NCBI GenBank assembly: GCA_943704425.1
Contig: CALSCP010000313.1
Location: 170,713 to 234,712 of the forward strand
DNA: 64,000 bases
Reading direction: 5' to 3'
Source of the DNA: Ministeria vibrans ATCC 50519
Taxonomy: Eukaryota; Protista; Filasterea
Shown: positions 2,075 through 14,684 of the stretch, piece after piece
Layout of the letters: each line of letters begins with the position of its first letter
How positions within the stretch are numbered: position 1 is the first letter of the stretch
Translations under genes and position numbers: made by a program
Notes under the pieces: model-generated
The model's input: the letters and a program-made list of their open reading frames with translations, nothing else
What the model was told of the DNA's origin: nothing
The model's database searches: none

Positions 2075-4015
<1,941 letters not shown>

Positions 4016-6321: not shown

Positions 6322-9300
6322 ATGGAGCGGGGGGTTGTGAGCTGTTGGATTTTTCTGTTTGTGGCATTCTGTGGTACCTGAGAAGTTTGTGGTTTTTTTA
6401 ACTGCGCTGTTTCGATTGACCGTTGGCTCCCTTGCTCCCATTCAGGGCTGGTCCCCACTTGGGCCATCTCAGTTCACTCGAGCGGGTCAACGCTGATCGG
6501 AACAGACGGCGGGAAGTCGCTGTCGCTTGCTATTGATGTGTCATCGAACGCCAACCGCATTCTGCTCGTTGGCGTCTCTATTGCGCAGGGCAGCGACGAG
6601 GTGGTGCAGAACATGACGCTGGGTGGCCAATCGTGTGTGTTTCACGGCAAAGCGGAGCACGACAAGGCGCTCGTTGAAATATGGTCGTTTGTTGGACCTT
6701 CTATTGGTGTACAGACGCTTTCGGTGCAGGTGAGCGCCAGCACACACAAAGGGGTGGTGGTGGGCGCAGTTGAGATGGCGGGTGTCGACCAAGCGTCGCC
6801 TGTTGGGACGCCGCTGTACGAGGACGATGGGCCGGACGCGTCAACACAAATCCAGGCGACAGCCAGCCTGGCCGGCGAAATGCTCTTCTCGGCAGTGACG
6901 TTCGCCAAAAGCGAAAACCTGGCATTGACTCCTGGCAGCGGCATGACGGAGCTGTGGGAACGGTACACGGCTGACTCGGAAGCAAATGGCGCGGGGGGCT
7001 GGCAGAATGGCGCGCCATCAGCGATAGTCAGGTGGACGAGCAATGTAAGCGACAAGCATGCGATGGCAGCGGTGCGTGTACTGCCATCGACGAGCTCCAG
7101 CACATGTTCGAGCACGCCGTGTGCCAATGGCGCAACGTGTGTCGAAGGCGCTAGTAGCTTCACTTGTGTGTGTGCTGCCGGATATGCTGACACATTCTGC
7201 GAGAAAAACATTGACGAGTGCGAGTCGAGTCCGTGCCAGAACAGCGGTGTCTGCGCTGATGCTGTCAACGGCTTTTCTTGCGCCTGCGCCGCTGGATTCG
7301 CCGGCACTCTCTGCGAGAACAACGTTGACGAGTGTGCGTCGAGTCCGTGCCNNNNNNNNGTCGAGTCCGTGCCAAAACAGCGGAGTCTGCACTGACGCTG
7401 TCGACGGCTTTTCATGCGCCTGCGCCGCTGGATTCACCGGCATTTTGTGCGAGAACAACATTGACGAGTNNNNNNNNNNNNNNNNNNNNNNNNNNNNNNN
7501 NNNNNNNNNNNNNNNNNNNNNNNNNNNNNNNNNNNNNNNNNNNNNNNNNNNNNNNNNNNNNNNNNTGTGTCGAGTCCGTGCCAAAACAGTGGAGTCTGCA
7601 CTGACGCTGTCGACGGCTTTTCATGCGCCTGCGCCGCTGGATTCACCGGCATTTTGTGCGAGAACAACATTGACGAGTGTGTGTCCAGTCCGTGTCAGAA
7701 CAGCGGAGTCTGCACTGACGGCGTGAACGGATTCACATGTGCTTGCGAAGCTGGCTGGTTTGGCATTGATTGCTCAAGTGATAGGGATGAGTGTGCGTCG
7801 AGTCCGTGCCAGAACAGCGGAGTCTGCGCTGACGCTGTCAACGGCTTTTCATGCGCCTGCGCCGCTGGATTCACCGGCATTTTGTGCGAGAACAACATTG
7901 ACGAGTGTGTGTCGAGTCCGTGCCAAAACACCGGAGTCTGCACTGACGCTGTCGACGGCTTTTCATGCGCCTGCGCCGCTGGATTCACCGGCATTTTGTG
8001 CGAGAACAACATTGACGAGTGTGCGTCGAGTCCGTGTCAGAACGGCGGAGTCTGCACTGACGGCGTGAATGGGTTTTCATGCGCCTGCGCCGCTGGATTC
8101 ACCGGCACTTTGTGCGAGAACAACATTGACGAGTGTGCCTCGAGTCCGTGCCAAAACAGTGGAGTCTGCACTGACGCTGTCGACGGCTTTTCATGCGCCT
8201 GCGCCGCTGGATTCACCGGCATTTTGTGCGAGAACAACATTGACGAGTGTGCCTCGAGTCCGTGCCAAAACAGTGGAGTCTGCACTGACGCTGTCAACGG
8301 CTTTTCATGCGCCTGCGCCGCTGGATTCACCGGCATTTTGTGCGAGAACAACATTGACGAGTGTGTGTCGAGTCCGTGTCAGAACGGCGGAGTCTGCACT
8401 GACGGCGTGAATGGGTTTTCATGCGCCTGCGCCGCTGGATTCACCGGCACTCTGTGCGAGAACAACATTGACGAGTGTGCATCGTCGCCCTGCCAAAACG
8501 CTGGCTCGTGTTCCGACGCTGTCGACATGTATACTTGTTCTTGTGCATACGGCTTTGTCGGCAACTTCTGCGAGAATACTGGCTTTGTGCTCACCTCCGC
8601 AGGCGGTTCTTTTACGTTTGGCGCCATGACAATCGTTGCACCGCTCAACGCCGTCCTCACAGACGTCACTCTGTTTGTGGGTACCATTGCTGCTGCTTCA
8701 GCGCCTGCGGCACCCATCTCCGCTGTTGCTGTCCAGTCAACCACTTACTACTACAAAGTGCCTGCCCTGGGCACGACCGACTTTTTAAAGGACATTGTGT
8801 TGCACGTGGAAACATCAAGTGGCACCGCACCCCCAAGTGACGCTGAGGTGTACATTGCATCCCCCGTCGTTACTCCAGGGCCGTGGGTTGCGACTCGGCA
8901 AGAGTCTAGTCGACGACGTGTGCTGGCGTGCACCACGGCCACCAGTGTGTGCGGTCTTGCAGCTGTGCCCTCTGCGCAGGTGGGTGTTTTTGCTGTGGAT
9001 GAGTGTACTTCGTCGCCTTGCTCTGGAAGCGCCACATGTGTCGACGAGCTCAATCAGTTCTCTTGCACTTGCCCCATTGGCATGACCGGCGCTCAGTGCG
9101 AGCTTGAGATTAACGAGTGCTCCAGCAGCCCTTGCATGAATGGCGCTACCTGTACCGACTCTCTCGGCAGTTTTTCATGCACGTGTTCTTCTGGATTTTC
9201 TGGCTCTCTTTGCGAAAACAATGTCGACGAGTGCGCCTCCACTCCCTGTCAAAATGGCGCTGTCTGCTCGGACGGGACCAGCAGTTTTTCGTGCGCCTGC

Positions 9301-12300
9301 TCGACTGGATTTGCTGGCACCCTCTGCGAGAACAACGTCGACGAGTGTGCGTCCGCTCCCTGTCAAAATGGCGGTACTTGCACTGATGTGACTGCGGGAT
9401 TCTTTTGCACATGTGTATCGGGTGTTACGGGCCCGGTGTGTGATGTTGGGTCACCAGTGACGTTGGGCTCGGGCGCTGCGAGCAGCTCAATCGCGCCGAT
9501 TGTTGCGGGAATTGTGGCTGCAGTGCTACTCGTTGTGCTGCTGGTGTTTGTCTTGTTGCGTCGTCGCAGCCGGTGGAACACAGAGAAGCTGGATGTGCGA
9601 AGCGACGAATTGGAAATGGCGCGTCAGTCATCGACTGTCCCTTTCCTCGTGGGTCACAGTTCCGAGTGTCAGTTGGTGAACGGTACTGACACGGTCCACA
9701 TGTCTGAGTTGGCTAATCTTGGACTGATGCGTCGCTACGACGACGCTGACTATGCCTTCCCGGTGGCGTTTGCGCGGGTTCAACCGCAGATTCAGGCACT
9801 GTACGATGACTTACAGGACACGCGCCGCGAGCCGCTTGAGATCACATATGCGAGCATTACGGTGAAGCGCGACGGAGTGTGGAAGACGCACACCGTCGAC
9901 GGCGAGCTTGTGGAGGCGAGTGTGTTGCGACCGGACGCGCGCGGTGTGTGGCGCTCGGAACACGGCGATGCGGTATACGATTCGATTTGGTCAGACGCCA
10001 TGGGCCAGCCTGTGTGTGCCGAAGAGGTCGTGCTTGACCGCGACCGTGGCGTGTACAAGACACGCGATGGCGAGACTGTCTTTGCCGATCTGGTCTTGTA
10101 CGATCAGGTGCGACACGAGCACGTGTGTGACAATGGACGACGTCTAATTTGCAGTCGCGACGGCAAGTGGCGCACCGAAGCCGACGAAGTGGTGTACGCC
10201 AATGGCAACTCACGTCTGGTGCGCGGCACGGACGGCTGCTACCGCGACGCTGATGGCAACGTTGTGTACGGCAATCGACCGCAGCTGATTCGGTCAGAGG
10301 CGGACAACAAATGGCACACTCCTCTCGGCGAAGTCATCGACTGTGCCGCGCCAAAGCAGCATCGCGATGGAACATGGCGCGACGCCGCTGGCGCTGTGGT
10401 GTACGGCAACCGCTTGCACTTGTTGTCGCGAGGCAACAATGAGTATGTGTCGGCGGATGGTAAACCAGTGTACGCCAATGGGCAGGGCCTGGTGCGTGTG
10501 AACGCAGCCGGCGTGTACACCTGTGGCAACGATGTCATCTACGCAAACACAAGCGGACGAGCCGCGTCGAACGATCCGGCCATGTACGCAAACGGCGCTG
10601 GTGGCGTCGGAAGCGAGTACGGCATGTTGGGAGGCTCGGCCGTGTACGCCAATGGTGTGGGGCAGGCAGACGATCAGTACGCCATGATGGATCCGCGCAC
10701 TCAAGCAACGTATGCGAATGGTGTGGGACAGGCAGGTGATGACTATGCCATGATGGACCCGCGCACTCAAGCAACGTATGCGAATGGTGTGGGACAGGCA
10801 GGTGGCGAGTACGCCATGATGGACCCGCGCACTCAAGCAACGTATGCGAATGGTGTGGGACAGGCAGGTGGTGAGTACGCCATGATGGACCCGCGCACTC
10901 AAGCAACGTATGCGAATGGTGTGGGACAGGCAGGTGGTGAGTATGCCATGATGGACGCGCGTTCGCGTCCAACCTACGCCAACACCGAGGGACAGGCAGA
11001 CGAAGAGTATGCCATGATTGCGCCTCAGAGTCACCCGTCGTATGCCAACTCGGAAGCGGTTGCGGTGGACGCCATGTACTCGTTCCTCGACAAGGCTGTG
11101 CCAAACTATGCTAACGAGCAGACGCAGCCGCAAGGTACGGTGCAGCGACCTGACGATGTGTTATACAGCACGCTGACGGATGCGCGTCGCGTCTACGAGT
11201 CTCGCAAGGCACCTGCACCAGCGTATGCGAACAATAACGCGGGAGCGAACAATGGCGATGTGTTGCAGCGTCGACCAAGCATGTATCGATCGGCTGCCGA
11301 AGAGAGCGACTACATGACGCTGTCGGCGGTTCTGGGCGAACGACGTGTCCTGGATGCGTCTCGGGCGCCCGTTGTCGCGAGCAAAGCCGTCGAGAACGAG
11401 ACAGTGGTAGCGGACGACGGCACACGCGAGCTGGGCGATGACTACACCGATTTTGCGTGTGTGCACAAGGACAAGACGCGTCACGCGGACCTGTACAAGA
11501 CGGTTCGACGCCGCCAGCCGACGCGCAAGCTTGACGACGACGAGATGGGCGGCACGGGCGGCTCGTCACGCGCCAACCCACACAGCACGCAGATTGAGGC
11601 ACTCATGGACAAGGCAACGCCGCGCGAGTGGATTACCTTTGTTGATCTGCTGGCCGAGTCGGAGTTTGGAAAGGTATACTATATGCTCATATGTGTCGAA
11701 TGGCGGTGCGACGTTGTCTAAAGAAAATATGAATCATACTATAATTAATCCTTAATTCGTTAATTATTTGTACAGGTGTTTTTGGCGGTGAGGAGTGAAC
11801 CAAACAAGAGTGGCGAGCAGACGCGGAAGCTGGTCGCAGTGAAGACACTGAGTGGGGACGAGAGCAACAGCAAGCAGATTGAGTTTCTGCAGGAAGCGAT
11901 GCTGCTGCGGCAGTTTGACCATCCCAATGTACTTGGGCTGCAGGGCATGTGCCTGGACGGCGCGCCCTGGCTCATGGTTGTCGAGCACTGTCCACACGGC
12001 GATCTGCGCTCCTTTTGCCGTGCGCTTGTCGTGGCCCGCAGCATTGTAACGTTTGCTGACCAGCTGCACATGTCCTACCAGGTTGCGTCCGCCATGGAGT
12101 ACCTGTCGCAGCGAGGCTTTGTGCACCGCGACCTGGCTGCACGCAACATCCAAGTGGGCAACCGCATGGTGCTCAAGGTGGCCGACTTCACGCTGGCGCG
12201 CAAAACGCTCACCAAGGATGAGCAGGCGCACGCCCGCATGCCCGTCCGTTGGATGGCCCCCGAGTCACTTCTCTTCCGTCGCTTCTCCAGTCGCTCCGAC

Positions 12301-12776
12301 GTCTGGTCTTTTGGTGTGCTCATGTGGGAGATTATGACTTTTGGTGCGCACCGCCCGTACAGCGGCATCAAGGCAGCTGACTTGGTCCACCTGCTGCGCG
12401 ACGGACGCCGTCTTCAGTGTCCCGCAGGCTGTCCCGAAGACCTTTATCTCGTCATGCTTATGTGCTGGAGTCAGGTAAATAATAAAAATTATAATGATAA
12501 TAATAATAATAAGTATAATAATAATAATATTAATAATTATTATTATTATTATTATTATTATTATTGCTGCTGTTAGAAGCGAAGTACAATGATTGTTTGT
12601 TATTCTCACCTTTCATTTTTCATGCCACTACATCTTAGGCGACGCCCGACCGTCCATCGTTTGGCGAGTTGTCGACGCTGTTGAAGCAAACGCGTGACGC
12701 TGCCATTGAGCAGACGGGTAAGGGCCTGCAGGATCTACCACGTCTGCTCGAGGAGGCCATCGCCGGCACTGAGTGA
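6322..12776 (+). CDS. Receptor tyrosine kinase (possible pseudokinase): signal peptide, N-terminal beta-rich domain, EGF repeats, ZU5-like insert, EGF repeats, TM, Tyr-motif repeat tail, TK domain
   Basis: Exons 6322-6373, 6446-11673 (broken by N gaps), 11776-12474, 12639-12776. Signal peptide [24 protein letters not shown]; [27 protein letters not shown]; TK motifs [36 protein letters not shown]. Confidence 0.9.
7100..8580 (+). repeat. Tandem array of near-identical 114-bp calcium-binding EGF repeats (at least 12; copy number uncertain)
   Basis: Repeated [33 protein letters not shown]; N gaps at 7352-7359 and 7470-7565 lie inside the array. Confidence 0.95.
10645..11020 (+). repeat. 66-bp coding tandem repeat (22 aa [22 protein letters not shown]), about 5 copies
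   Basis: Direct repeats tatgcgaatggtgtgggacaggcaggtg..gccatgatggacccgcgcactcaagcaacg. Confidence 0.95.
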
Positions 12777-13152
12777 TCGATCATCAATAATAGTACATTT
12801 CCTTTACCATTTTTCTTTAACAGAAATCACCATGACAGTGTGACCTTCAAATTTATAAATGACTCATTTTTGTGTTTTGTGGGATGGGGAGAATATTAGC
12901 ACGGCGCACAACACTTGAGTGAGTTGTGTTACATGAGTGAATTGTAAGAAAATAAGTAGAGAATGGGAAAAGTCAAAAGCTCACCCAAGCCTCAAGGGGA
13001 TGAAACGTATTATTATTATAGAATATGAGGATTGAGGGACTTGTATTTTTGACTCCATTCTCTCAACATTATTCATTAAGAATAGTGTCTGTCTCACAGT
13101 AGTCGAATAAATCAGGTTCAACTTCAAGAACTTTTTTTTTCACGTAAATACT

Positions 13153-14684
13153 ATGATGATCTCGTCTGTGGTGAGACGCGCAGCGCAGCTGGGTGTCGTG
13201 CAGCGAGCGATGGCGACGATGGCCATCAAGATGCCTGCGCTGTCGCCGACCATGGAGAGCGGCCAGGTCAAGTCCTGGTCCGTCCAAGTGGGGGACGAGG
13301 TACCCCTGCTTGTCATATCGTTTCTTTTGCACGCATGCCCAATCCTGATGTTTCAAATGTGTGTGTGTGTGTGTGTGTGTTTTTTTTTTGACTCGTTCGC
13401 ATATTTTGGAGACAATCACGCAAAACTGACACAATCGCGTCTGTGGCGCACAGGTGAGCGCTGGCGACGTGCTTTTCGTCGTGGAGACGGACAAGGCCGC
13501 TATGGACGTGGAGTCGTCGGACGACGGCGTAGTCGCCAAGATTCTAGTGGAGGCGAACGCAGACCAAGTGCCCATTGGCAGAGTGGTCGCGCTCCTGGTT
13601 GAGCCCGGCGAAGACCCCGCGTCGGCCGTGATGCCTGCCGAGACCAGTGGAGCTGTAGCAGCAGCAGCACCACCAGCGCCATCCTCGTCCCCGGCAGCGT
13701 CGTCACAACCAGCGTCTCTAGCCAGCACAACATCTGCGACAGCAACCATTCCCTCCAACTTGTTTCTGTCGCCCGCAGTGCGTCGCGTCGTGCTTGAACA
13801 TGGCGTTGATGTGTCCGCTGTGACAGCAACAGGGCCTGGCGGACGCCTGCTCAAAAGTGACATCCTTGCGTTTGTCAGCGGCGAAGCGACTGCGAAGCCA
13901 CAACCGAAATCGTCGGCAGCCGCAGCTGTCACTCCACGAGCACCGACCACCACCAGCAAGGCCACCAAGGGTCGAGTACCACCTACATCTCGCAGAGAAC
14001 GAACACACGTTGACCGAGCGATTGGCGAGGGCGCATCACGACCGAGCACGGCACAAGCAGGCTCGTTCGATGGCCAAATGATCACCGTCTCGGCGGATGT
14101 ACCACTGCGCTTCAACGCCACTCTCATCAACTCAGTACTGCACCCGCTTGCCCTGAACGCGCTTAAGGCCCACGGCGTATCAGATACCATTGAGTATGCA
14201 AAACCAAAGGACACTGAGAGAACGGCGAAAGAGAGGAGAGAGGGATAGAAAACACACCGATTCTGGTCGCCCGAGTGTGTGTGTGCGTATGTATGTCTTT
14301 GTGGTGTGTGTCTGTATATATATATATGTGTGTCTTTTGTGGTGTGTGTCTGTGTTTTTGTGGTGTGTGTGTGGATGAGCTAACTGGCATTGTGCGTAGA
14401 GTTATTGACATGAGCGGAAGTGGCGTGCGCGAGGCGACGGGAGTCGTCCAGCAGGGCATTAGTGCACCCACTCTGCACGTGGGCGCACCCACTGTTCTTG
14501 CCAGTACGATGTCTCTATTTTTTATCATTTTGTATAGATGTGTGTGTGTGTCTGACTCCTTTGACTTGTAATAGAATCCGTTGTGACGACACTCAGTCTC
14601 ACATGCGATTCGACCGATGCGCTTTCGGTTGCGCAGTGTCTCTCCGATGTGAGAGACGCACTCTCAGGACTACAGTCGCAGTAA
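13153..14684 (+). CDS. Pyruvate dehydrogenase protein X / E3-binding protein-like (lipoyl domain, subunit-binding domain, reduced core domain)
   Basis: Mitochondrial-type presequence, MPALSPTMESG, lipoyl-Lys motif VETDKAAMDVE, PSBD LSPAVRR..ATGPGGRLLKSDI, short spliced C-terminal domain without DHRxxDG. Confidence 0.75.

Follow-up and report, generated by a model that had tools for sequence, protein, structure and literature searches.

The window analysed here is a stretch of 64,000 nucleotides from the filasterean Ministeria vibrans ATCC 50519 (contig CALSCP010000313.1, positions 170,713 to 234,712 of the forward strand), and it contains a gene for a type I receptor composed of a probable signal peptide, an ectodomain of EGF repeats, one transmembrane (TM) helix, a juxtamembrane segment of about 690 residues and a tyrosine-kinase fold followed by a very short tail. 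The juxtamembrane segment carries a tandem array of tyrosine motifs, which is the subject of this analysis. The genome (29.7 Mb) is rich in tyrosine kinases, and its assembly, consisting of 2860 contigs, was searched exon by exon. The parts of the gene, in window coordinates, are the following.

6322..6373, + strand: probable first exon with a start codon and a hydrophobic signal peptide, followed by a short intron to about 6445 (sequence reading)
6446..9489, + strand: ectodomain with a Cys-poor N-terminal module, a long EGF array, a non-EGF insert and further EGF repeats (Pfam, open reading frames, Tandem Repeats Finder)
9490..9558, + strand: TM helix of 23 hydrophobic residues, then the stop-transfer sequence RRRSR (sequence reading)
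9820..10578, + strand: juxtamembrane zone 1, with beta-hairpin-like repeats of the form G-x-W/Y-R-x-x-x-G-x-V-V-Y-[AG]-N that include Y[AG]N motifs nos. 1 to 5 (alignment, Pfam, AlphaFold)
10585..11132, + strand: juxtamembrane zone 2, the bipartite array of about nine units with YAN and a tyrosine in acidic context (motif counts, register, composition, AlphaFold)
10644..11018, + strand: recently amplified or homogenised core of zone 2, a 66-bp unit in 4.8 copies (to 10961) with degenerate copies to 11018 (Tandem Repeats Finder)
10195, 10267, 10402, 10471, 10540, 10585, 10645, 10711, 10777, 10843, 10909, 10975, 11041, 11107 and 11224, + strand: starts of the Y[AG]N motifs, in the frame of the open reading frame; the first five lie in zone 1
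10678, 10744, 10810, 10876 and 10942, + strand: starts of the YAMM motifs, in the same frame
11164..11673, + strand: conserved pre-kinase juxtamembrane part and start of the kinase N-lobe, with one YAN at 11224 and a degenerate glycine-rich loop (G-loop), AESEFGK (paralogue alignment)
11674..11775, + strand: intron 1, 102 nt, GT..AG, skipped in transcript contigs of runs X1, X4 and X6
11776..12474, + strand: main kinase exon, with VAVK, the alpha-C Glu and HRDLAARN kept, DFT for DFG and an activation loop without tyrosine (Pfam PK_Tyr_Ser-Thr 2e-73, motif table)
12475..12638, + strand: intron 2 with an AAT/ATT microsatellite, skipped in a transcript contig of run X4 (Tandem Repeats Finder)
12639..12777, + strand: last exon, which completes the kinase fold and encodes a tyrosine-free C-terminal tail of about 30 residues, then the stop codon (transcripts, sequence reading)

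The proposal of a sequence-only reading that this gene encodes a receptor tyrosine kinase (RTK) is borne out by the single TM helix, by the Pfam matches to EGF (3.4e-87, 13 stretches in 7567-9486) and PK_Tyr_Ser-Thr (2e-73, in the open reading frame 11776-12477), and by the joining of the exons in transcripts. The GT donor and AG acceptor of the putative short intron behind the probable first exon restore the frame of the ectodomain. The EGF repeats are near-identical 114-bp units according to Tandem Repeats Finder, and the number of units in the gene is uncertain because two runs of N (7353-7360 and 7471-7566) interrupt them. Introns and intergenic DNA are far more AT-rich than the exons, and an (AAT)n/(ATT)n microsatellite at 12478-12565 makes up most of intron 2.

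Transcript contigs of three runs, mapped on 9300-12900, are continuous over 9300-10776 and 10914-11671 and break only inside the near-identical repeats, where short unitigs of high depth take over. Spliced transcripts are present in runs of 2011, 2019 and 2025, a run of 2022 also contains sequence of the gene, and a polyA marine metatranscriptome covers several pieces of the gene, including 10848-11116. Only the two kinase introns are missing from the spliced contigs, and the exon with the array is retained. The array is therefore part of the mature mRNA, and the concern that the region might be spliced out is answered by transcripts from three runs. The placement of the array in the tail of the receptor, on the other hand, has to be corrected. 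The G-loop closes the long exon (nt ~11650-11673) and the protein ends about 30 residues past the kinase fold, so that the array lies N-terminal to the kinase, in the long juxtamembrane segment, and the true tail is free of tyrosine.

The cytoplasmic part of the + strand open reading frame 7567-11721, which has no stops, contains in frame exactly the 15 Y[AG]N and 5 YAMM motifs counted earlier, and every YxN of this part is of the Y[AG]N form (15/15). Both motifs agree with the textbook consensus sequences for phosphotyrosine (pY) docking, namely pYxN for Grb2 and pYxxM for PI3K (PMC3787023), of which the YMNM site of CD28 is a dual case. The repeat claimed to place the two motifs alternately was likewise recovered: Tandem Repeats Finder reports a 66-bp unit in 4.8 copies at 10644-10961, with 93% matches and 0 indels, and its rows of longer period carry the repeat on to 11018. 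In-register units of 22 residues begin at residues 1027, 1049, 1071, 1093 and 1115, and YAN and YAMM occupy positions 1 and 12 of each central unit, which results in alternation every 11 residues. A central unit opens with YANGVGQA, followed by acidic residues ahead of the second tyrosine. With degenerate flanking units at residues 1007, 1137, 1159 and 1181 the total comes to about nine. The second tyrosine of the unit stands in an acidic context throughout (EYGML, five times YAMM, EYAMI, AMYSFL); D or E directly precedes all five YAMM, of which EYAMI and EYGML are variants.

The density of YxN is far above that expected from composition. Composition-preserving shuffles of the cytoplasmic segment give 1.9 YxN compared with the 15 observed, and none of 5000 reaches 15; after removal of three near-identical copies, 12 YxN remain compared with 1.6 in shuffles, and again none of 5000 reaches 12. 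Ten of the 15 YxN (residues 1007-1220) lie in low-complexity sequence without predicted structure. The array segment contains 9% Tyr, is rich in A, G, Q, M, D and T and has almost no K, L, I, F or W. AlphaFold assigned it zero secondary structure with a predicted local distance difference test score (pLDDT) of 20-26, in a model whose input was an alignment of 2 sequences and whose mean pLDDT was 33, and which gives a coarse hint of order or disorder at most. The array segment is probably disordered.

The centre of the array was recently expanded or homogenised. The central units differ from one another by 1-4 nt, with a proportion of synonymous differences (pS) of 0.07-0.13. Between the first unit and these there are 5-6 synonymous differences and only 3 non-synonymous ones (pS 0.34-0.42; proportion of non-synonymous differences, pN, 0.06), and the sixth unit is far diverged. 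In the six units compared YAN, GQA and YAM are invariant, and replacements are confined to the acidic residues ahead of the second tyrosine and to the spacer. Because the older units show pS far above pN, the array is old and under purifying selection. Amplification, as suggested from the sequence, is evident and is recent relative to the only paralogue of the same architecture in the genome (C1674, minus strand), in which a short Gly/Tyr-rich linker with 3 dispersed YVN joins the conserved parts in place of a nine-unit array. Differences from the window were seen at 10716, 10743, 10971, 11105 and 11210 in transcript contigs of other runs. They include one synonymous change, a D-to-E replacement ahead of the second tyrosine in unit 2 and an N-to-S replacement just before the YAN at residue 1181, and represent either strain polymorphism or alternative paths through the repeat.

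Slippage or unequal crossing-over of the 66-bp unit in a tolerant linker, with a coincidental likeness to docking motifs, would agree with the near-identity of the central units in DNA and with the lack of an array in C1674. Such a functionless expansion is already disfavoured and must be regarded as highly improbable, since the oldest unit shows 6 synonymous versus 3 non-synonymous differences (pS 0.42, pN 0.06), the frame is kept with no indels, and the YxN enrichment both survives the removal of recent copies (12 versus 1.6) and is seen again, outside repeats, in further receptors and a second species.

Within the genome, the recurrence was seen when open frames near the 30 best tyrosine-kinase loci were scanned. 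Juxtamembrane YxN arrays are present in at least seven further RTK genes (C945, C1042, C1494, C2371, C155, C2362 and C1645) and occupy the same place, after the TM helix and before the kinase. The richest of them are given below; in each, 0 of 5000 shuffles reach the observed YxN count.

C945: 16 YxN (YGN) versus 2.5 in shuffles, partly tandem and alternating with AEYGEFANR
C1042: 12 YxN (Y[ASGTV]N) versus 1.7 in shuffles, with the TM helix visible
C1494: 10 YxN versus 1.4 in shuffles
C2371: 6 YxN versus 0.9 in shuffles, five of them YAN-P or YAN-L

The family consensus is [V/I/M/T]-Y-[A/G/S]-N-[G/R/E], while YAMM is confined to the window gene among the receptors compared. A DNA pattern of three closely spaced YxN codon sets is not enriched genome-wide (31 occurrences compared with 66 for the reversed control), and the meaning of this result is limited to the position of six hits relative to kinase exons: in C155, C945, C1042, C1494, C1645 and C2362 the pattern is followed, 0.3-1.5 kb downstream on its own strand, by a kinase exon.

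Two metagenomic proteins among the kinase exon's 150 best relatives in the library present similar arrays, namely P0083, with EGF repeats, a TM helix, 10 YxN and a kinase, and P0054, with 8 YGN in tandem. Their identity to any gene of this genome is only 42-48%, and both are therefore assigned to another species. P0054 looks like the other-species counterpart of C945. A EukProt protein of the choanoflagellate Salpingoeca infusionum (P0017), a cytoplasmic SH2 double-kinase, has five Y[VE]N between the SH2 domain and the first kinase, and clusters of YxN beside tyrosine kinases therefore occur in choanoflagellates as well. The recurrence of the enrichment in sister receptors and in a second species argues for a specific reader. 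Y-x-N persists even though the spacers, the repeat structure and the species vary, as is typical of a short linear motif that is recognized by a reader of its own.

The first five Y[AG]N motifs are to be viewed differently. The N-terminal part of zone 1, to nt ~10450, is strongly conserved with C1674; two of the five sites lie past this stretch, and C1674 keeps the +2 Asn at only one of the five. The sole Pfam match in zone 1 is to the 14-residue hairpin core of DUF4124 (PF13511; 8.1e-07, profile positions 17-30), and the weak AlphaFold model gives short strands with pLDDT 40-68. The zone-1 repeats (W/Y-R-D-x-x-G-x-V-V-Y) match the core of this profile repeatedly, whereas DUF4124 is a bacterial single-copy domain of which only the 14-residue core is matched, and the match concerns zone 1 rather than the YAN/YAMM array; the relation is one of resemblance, not of membership. 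The five zone-1 motifs may be structural. The earlier view of all 15 Y[AG]N as docking sites is retained as probable for the ten in the low-complexity array and pre-kinase part and is doubtful for the five in the hairpin-like zone. Pfam detected no MORN, YD or other repeat family in the juxtamembrane segment, either at default settings or at an E of 10, and matches to YL1_C and EloA-BP1 were rejected as spurious and driven by the repeat. A search of the ESM Atlas with zone 1 returned no usable match, while a protein homologue search with the whole juxtamembrane region returned only the paralogue P0001, from a metagenome assembly of the same or a near-identical organism.

The properties of zone 1 raise the alternative that the array functions independently of phosphorylation, either as a degenerate continuation of the hairpin repeat, with N-G turns, or as a low-complexity region of tyrosine stickers and G/A/Q/N-rich spacers, which would mediate clustering or the binding of partners or membrane without SH2 domains. 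Zone 1 shares with the array a period of about 22-24 residues and the VVY[AG]N(G) signature. It is conserved as a domain and its repeats match the DUF4124 core, while C945 and C1494 carry the same hairpin motif, RGTDGxYR..VYGN. Moreover, Gly occupies position +3 in 8 of the 15 motifs, the whole unit is constrained rather than the tyrosine motifs alone, and the composition is akin to that of prion-like low-complexity domains. Nevertheless, Pro and polar stretches (DPRTQAT) occur in the array, for which the model gives no strands and its lowest pLDDT, and which matches no repeat family even at the permissive threshold. The acidic context upstream of the second tyrosine is typical of kinase substrates, and divergent receptors and species keep Y-x-N amid wholly different spacers, which is the signature of a short linear motif and not of a fold. 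An independence of phosphorylation is accordingly regarded as unlikely.

The state of the kinase domains differs across the family. The window gene combines AESEFGKV, DFT and an activation loop without tyrosine with intact VAVK, alpha-C Glu and HRDLAARN, and the degenerate G-loop and DFG of this copy had been missed in the sequence-only reading; the paralogue C1674 has GKGEFGKV and DFG. In the MAFFT family alignment C945 reads VAVN and GFG and C2371 reads LIAQ and HGD..RS, while members low in YxN (C1961, C86, C155, C2736 and C2128) are canonical; the open reading frame of C1494 reads VAVE. The most YxN-rich receptors thus tend, as far as their motifs can tell, toward degraded catalytic sites, which fits receptors serving as substrates or scaffolds rather than as enzymes. 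The RTK-like locus G000:C945:275551-278286, with 16 YGN and with the beta3 Lys and the DFG Asp lost (VAVN and GFG), is a clear candidate for a pseudokinase scaffold.

Between the array and the kinase, the pre-kinase part shares YSTL, DYMTL, GDDYxDF and DLYKTV with C1674. At 11164-11560 the order GDDY-x-[DK]-[FY], D-x-[VIL]-Y-[KSA]-x-V and R-[ED]-W-L before the G-loop is common to the window gene, its paralogue and several other RTKs. This GDDY/REWL series looks like a family signature and possibly includes regulatory tyrosines. A regulatory role might also be considered for the array, as an autoinhibitory or pseudosubstrate segment (cf. Eph, Kit and PDGFR) or, in the case of YAMM, as an unphosphorylated YxxPhi sorting signal for AP-2-type adaptors in endocytosis. 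It would suit the location between TM helix and kinase, the fit of all YAMM, YAMI and YGML to YxxPhi, and the family-wide conserved tyrosines (GDDY, DLYKTV) that adjoin the kinase. However, known autoinhibitory juxtamembrane segments are short and single-copy, while here nine units lie 150-350 residues from the kinase, their number varies between paralogues, and arrays are present on receptors with a lost catalytic Lys or Asp, in which autoinhibition would be pointless; furthermore, YxN matches no known sorting signal. These considerations make a regulatory element of this kind distinctly unlikely.

The genome offers numerous potential readers of phosphotyrosine, with at least 28 SH2 and 98 SH3 exon matches, which were co-located; 20 loci were inspected by eye and candidates were submitted to PDB sequence searches. 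The following genes were recognized.

C2399: Crk-like
C2106: Nck-like, with three SH3 and an SH2
C1725: SHP2-like, with tandem SH2
C1168: PLCgamma-like
C596: RasGAP-like
C209: Vav-like
C1778: chimaerin-like
C2463 and C1831: SH3-SH2-kinase genes with a Csk-like SH2
C2235 and C1507: Src-like
C1113: Abl-like, 4e-18 to ABL2

For three candidate SH2 exons the PDB sequence searches were ambiguous or indicated other proteins; the SH2 of C335 was equally close to SHP2 and Grb2, and that of C486 was Src-like. PI3K_p85B, the adaptor-binding domain of class IA p110, was found at C1986 (4.3e-21), which implies a p85-type partner.

Established for this gene and its family are the anatomy, the expression, the repeat history, the selective constraint, the family-wide and cross-species enrichment of YxN and the degraded catalytic motifs. 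The reading we prefer, and hold to be somewhat likelier to be right than wrong, is that the receptor carries in its array a disordered, multivalent phosphotyrosine docking scaffold of its own, whose tyrosines would be phosphorylated mainly in trans and would recruit SH2 proteins. Clustering driven by ligand would lead to phosphorylation of the array tyrosines. Trans phosphorylation is proposed because the G-loop is degenerate, DFT replaces DFG and the activation loop has no tyrosine; much of it may be carried out by a catalytically intact partner receptor, such as the paralogue C1674, or by cytoplasmic kinases of Src, Abl or Csk type. The pYxN sites would then recruit one class of SH2 domain that selects Asn at +2, while pYAMM, in this gene only, would recruit a second class that selects Met at +3, presumably a p85-like PI3K adaptor. 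Gly at +3 may pre-form the turn that readers of Asn at +2 require. The SH2 domains of Abl, Grb7 and tensin also select Asn at +2, and an Abl-like reader is therefore an alternative to Grb2.

Several observations weigh against a docking scaffold with Grb2- and p85-type readers. No SH3-SH2-SH3 adaptor of Grb2 type was present among the 28 SH2 and 98 SH3 exon matches of the exon-wise search of the 2860 contigs, the sole cassette of this order being located in the Vav-like gene, and none of the inspected SH2 exons encodes the EF-loop Trp of Grb2. A p85 iSH2 profile run over the assembly gave only coiled-coil noise, and the sole p85 nSH2 candidate, a 49-residue exon where contig C1758 ends, resembles Abl as closely as p85. 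Of the Grb2 and p85 orthologues suggested as a check on the docking idea, the exon-wise search recovered neither a Grb2-type gene nor a p85 iSH2, but only the p110 adaptor-binding domain and this ambiguous SH2 fragment. The Gly at +3 (YANG) in 8 of 15 motifs is not the textbook +3 preference of Grb2, N-G is a classic beta-turn dipeptide, and zone 1 shows that VVY[AG]N can belong to a structural hairpin. In addition, the AlphaFold model is weak, the link between arrays and degraded kinases concerns few genes, and the kinase of the window gene, with HRD, beta3 Lys and alpha-C Glu intact, may still be active.

As regards the fragment at C1758 (16759-16905), the gene seems to start 14 residues before the SH2 domain (WYYKDLSR...FLVRESS) and is cut off by the contig end; no other candidate for a p55/p60-type regulatory subunit of PI3K was seen, and this one is ambiguous. 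Homologues of Grb2 and Shp2 have been reported in choanoflagellates (PMC7260276).

A broader proposal is tentative and in our view doubtful. It holds that a family of receptor scaffolds, in this organism and in at least one uncultured relative, carries evolvable juxtamembrane arrays of pYxN resembling LAT or IRS, on receptors whose kinases repeatedly decay to pseudokinases, and that the window gene is a recent derivative to which tandem duplication has added PI3K-type YAMM valency. Valency-tuned and possibly condensate-forming coupling of Ras and PI3K would in that case have been built into receptors before animals, with separate adaptors being a later or an alternative solution.

That an RTK of a unicellular holozoan can carry repeated, disordered tyrosine motifs which bind SH2 domains is already established by the RM2 repeats of Monosiga brevicollis RTKB2. 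These repeats are substrates of the receptor and of a Src kinase and, once phosphorylated, bind a Src SH2 domain (PMC3584944). The likeness to the window gene lies in the multiple lineage-specific disordered tyrosine repeats and in a receptor that bears its own docking array. RM2 is about 80 residues long, acidic and present in six copies C-terminal to the kinase, with a Src-type EEVYEAI motif, whereas the array described here has a 22-residue unit with two motifs (YAN and YAMM), lies N-terminal to a partly degenerate kinase and shares its YxN with a whole family, features by which it is set apart in description. The juxtamembrane position, the bipartite YAN/YAMM unit, the family and cross-species YxN signature and the association with decaying kinases were not found described, although earlier kinome surveys might carry the pattern.

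LAT, Gab, IRS and CD28 similarly present several pYxN and/or pYxxM sites on a disordered chain, and their valency-dependent assembly is the mechanism proposed here; in contrast to these separate adaptors or short tails, the array of the window gene is fused into the juxtamembrane segment of a receptor and owes its valency to recent tandem duplication. Another parallel is provided by ErbB3/HER3, a kinase-impaired receptor whose main role is the presentation of multiple (six) YxxM sites for p85 as well as Grb2/Shc-type sites, after phosphorylation in trans by an active family partner. The window gene has multiple putative docking sites, and its catalytic motifs are degenerate only at the G-loop and the Gly of DFG; the array-bearing sister receptors C945, C1494 and C2371 have lost the beta3 Lys and/or the DFG Asp. 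However, the sites of ErbB3 are dispersed in its C-terminal tail and not tandem, and ErbB3 lacks the catalytic Asp and the alpha-C Glu, while the window protein keeps HRD, beta3 Lys and alpha-C Glu and alters the G-loop and the Gly of DFG. The ectodomain architectures are unrelated and the origins independent.

What is known of phosphotyrosine wiring in unicellular relatives of animals comes mostly from domain counts, and to our knowledge Monosiga RTKB2 is the only unicellular receptor studied biochemically. The window gene and its sister receptors represent a concrete and testable unit of writer, substrate and reader, which offers a Y-x-N motif invariant across paralogues and species, a YxxM valency derived from datable tandem duplication, and a graded decay of the kinase. 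Once the readers are identified, it could be decided whether specificities of Grb2 and p85 type arose before animals, whether ErbB3-like pseudokinase scaffolding had an independent origin, and whether the number of repeats modulates the output of signalling. Should the motifs prove not to be phosphorylated, the family would instead represent a new repeat domain of the juxtamembrane segment.

Three further loci were noted in passing. An adaptor-like gene at G000:C257 (minus strand, ~2100-3700 of the locus) carries repeated GYEDPWPE/DYVDP motifs upstream of a C-terminal SH2 domain, an arrangement reminiscent of SLP-76/BLNK-type adaptors. At G000:C491 a kinase C-lobe is followed, after several hundred residues and in an adjacent frame, by an SH2 domain; if one gene is involved, this kinase-then-SH2 order would be unusual. 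In the window itself, the next gene downstream of the receptor (13153-14250) opens with a lipoyl-domain motif similar to those of PDH E2/E3BP and is apparently split by an intron with a GT/CA dinucleotide repeat.

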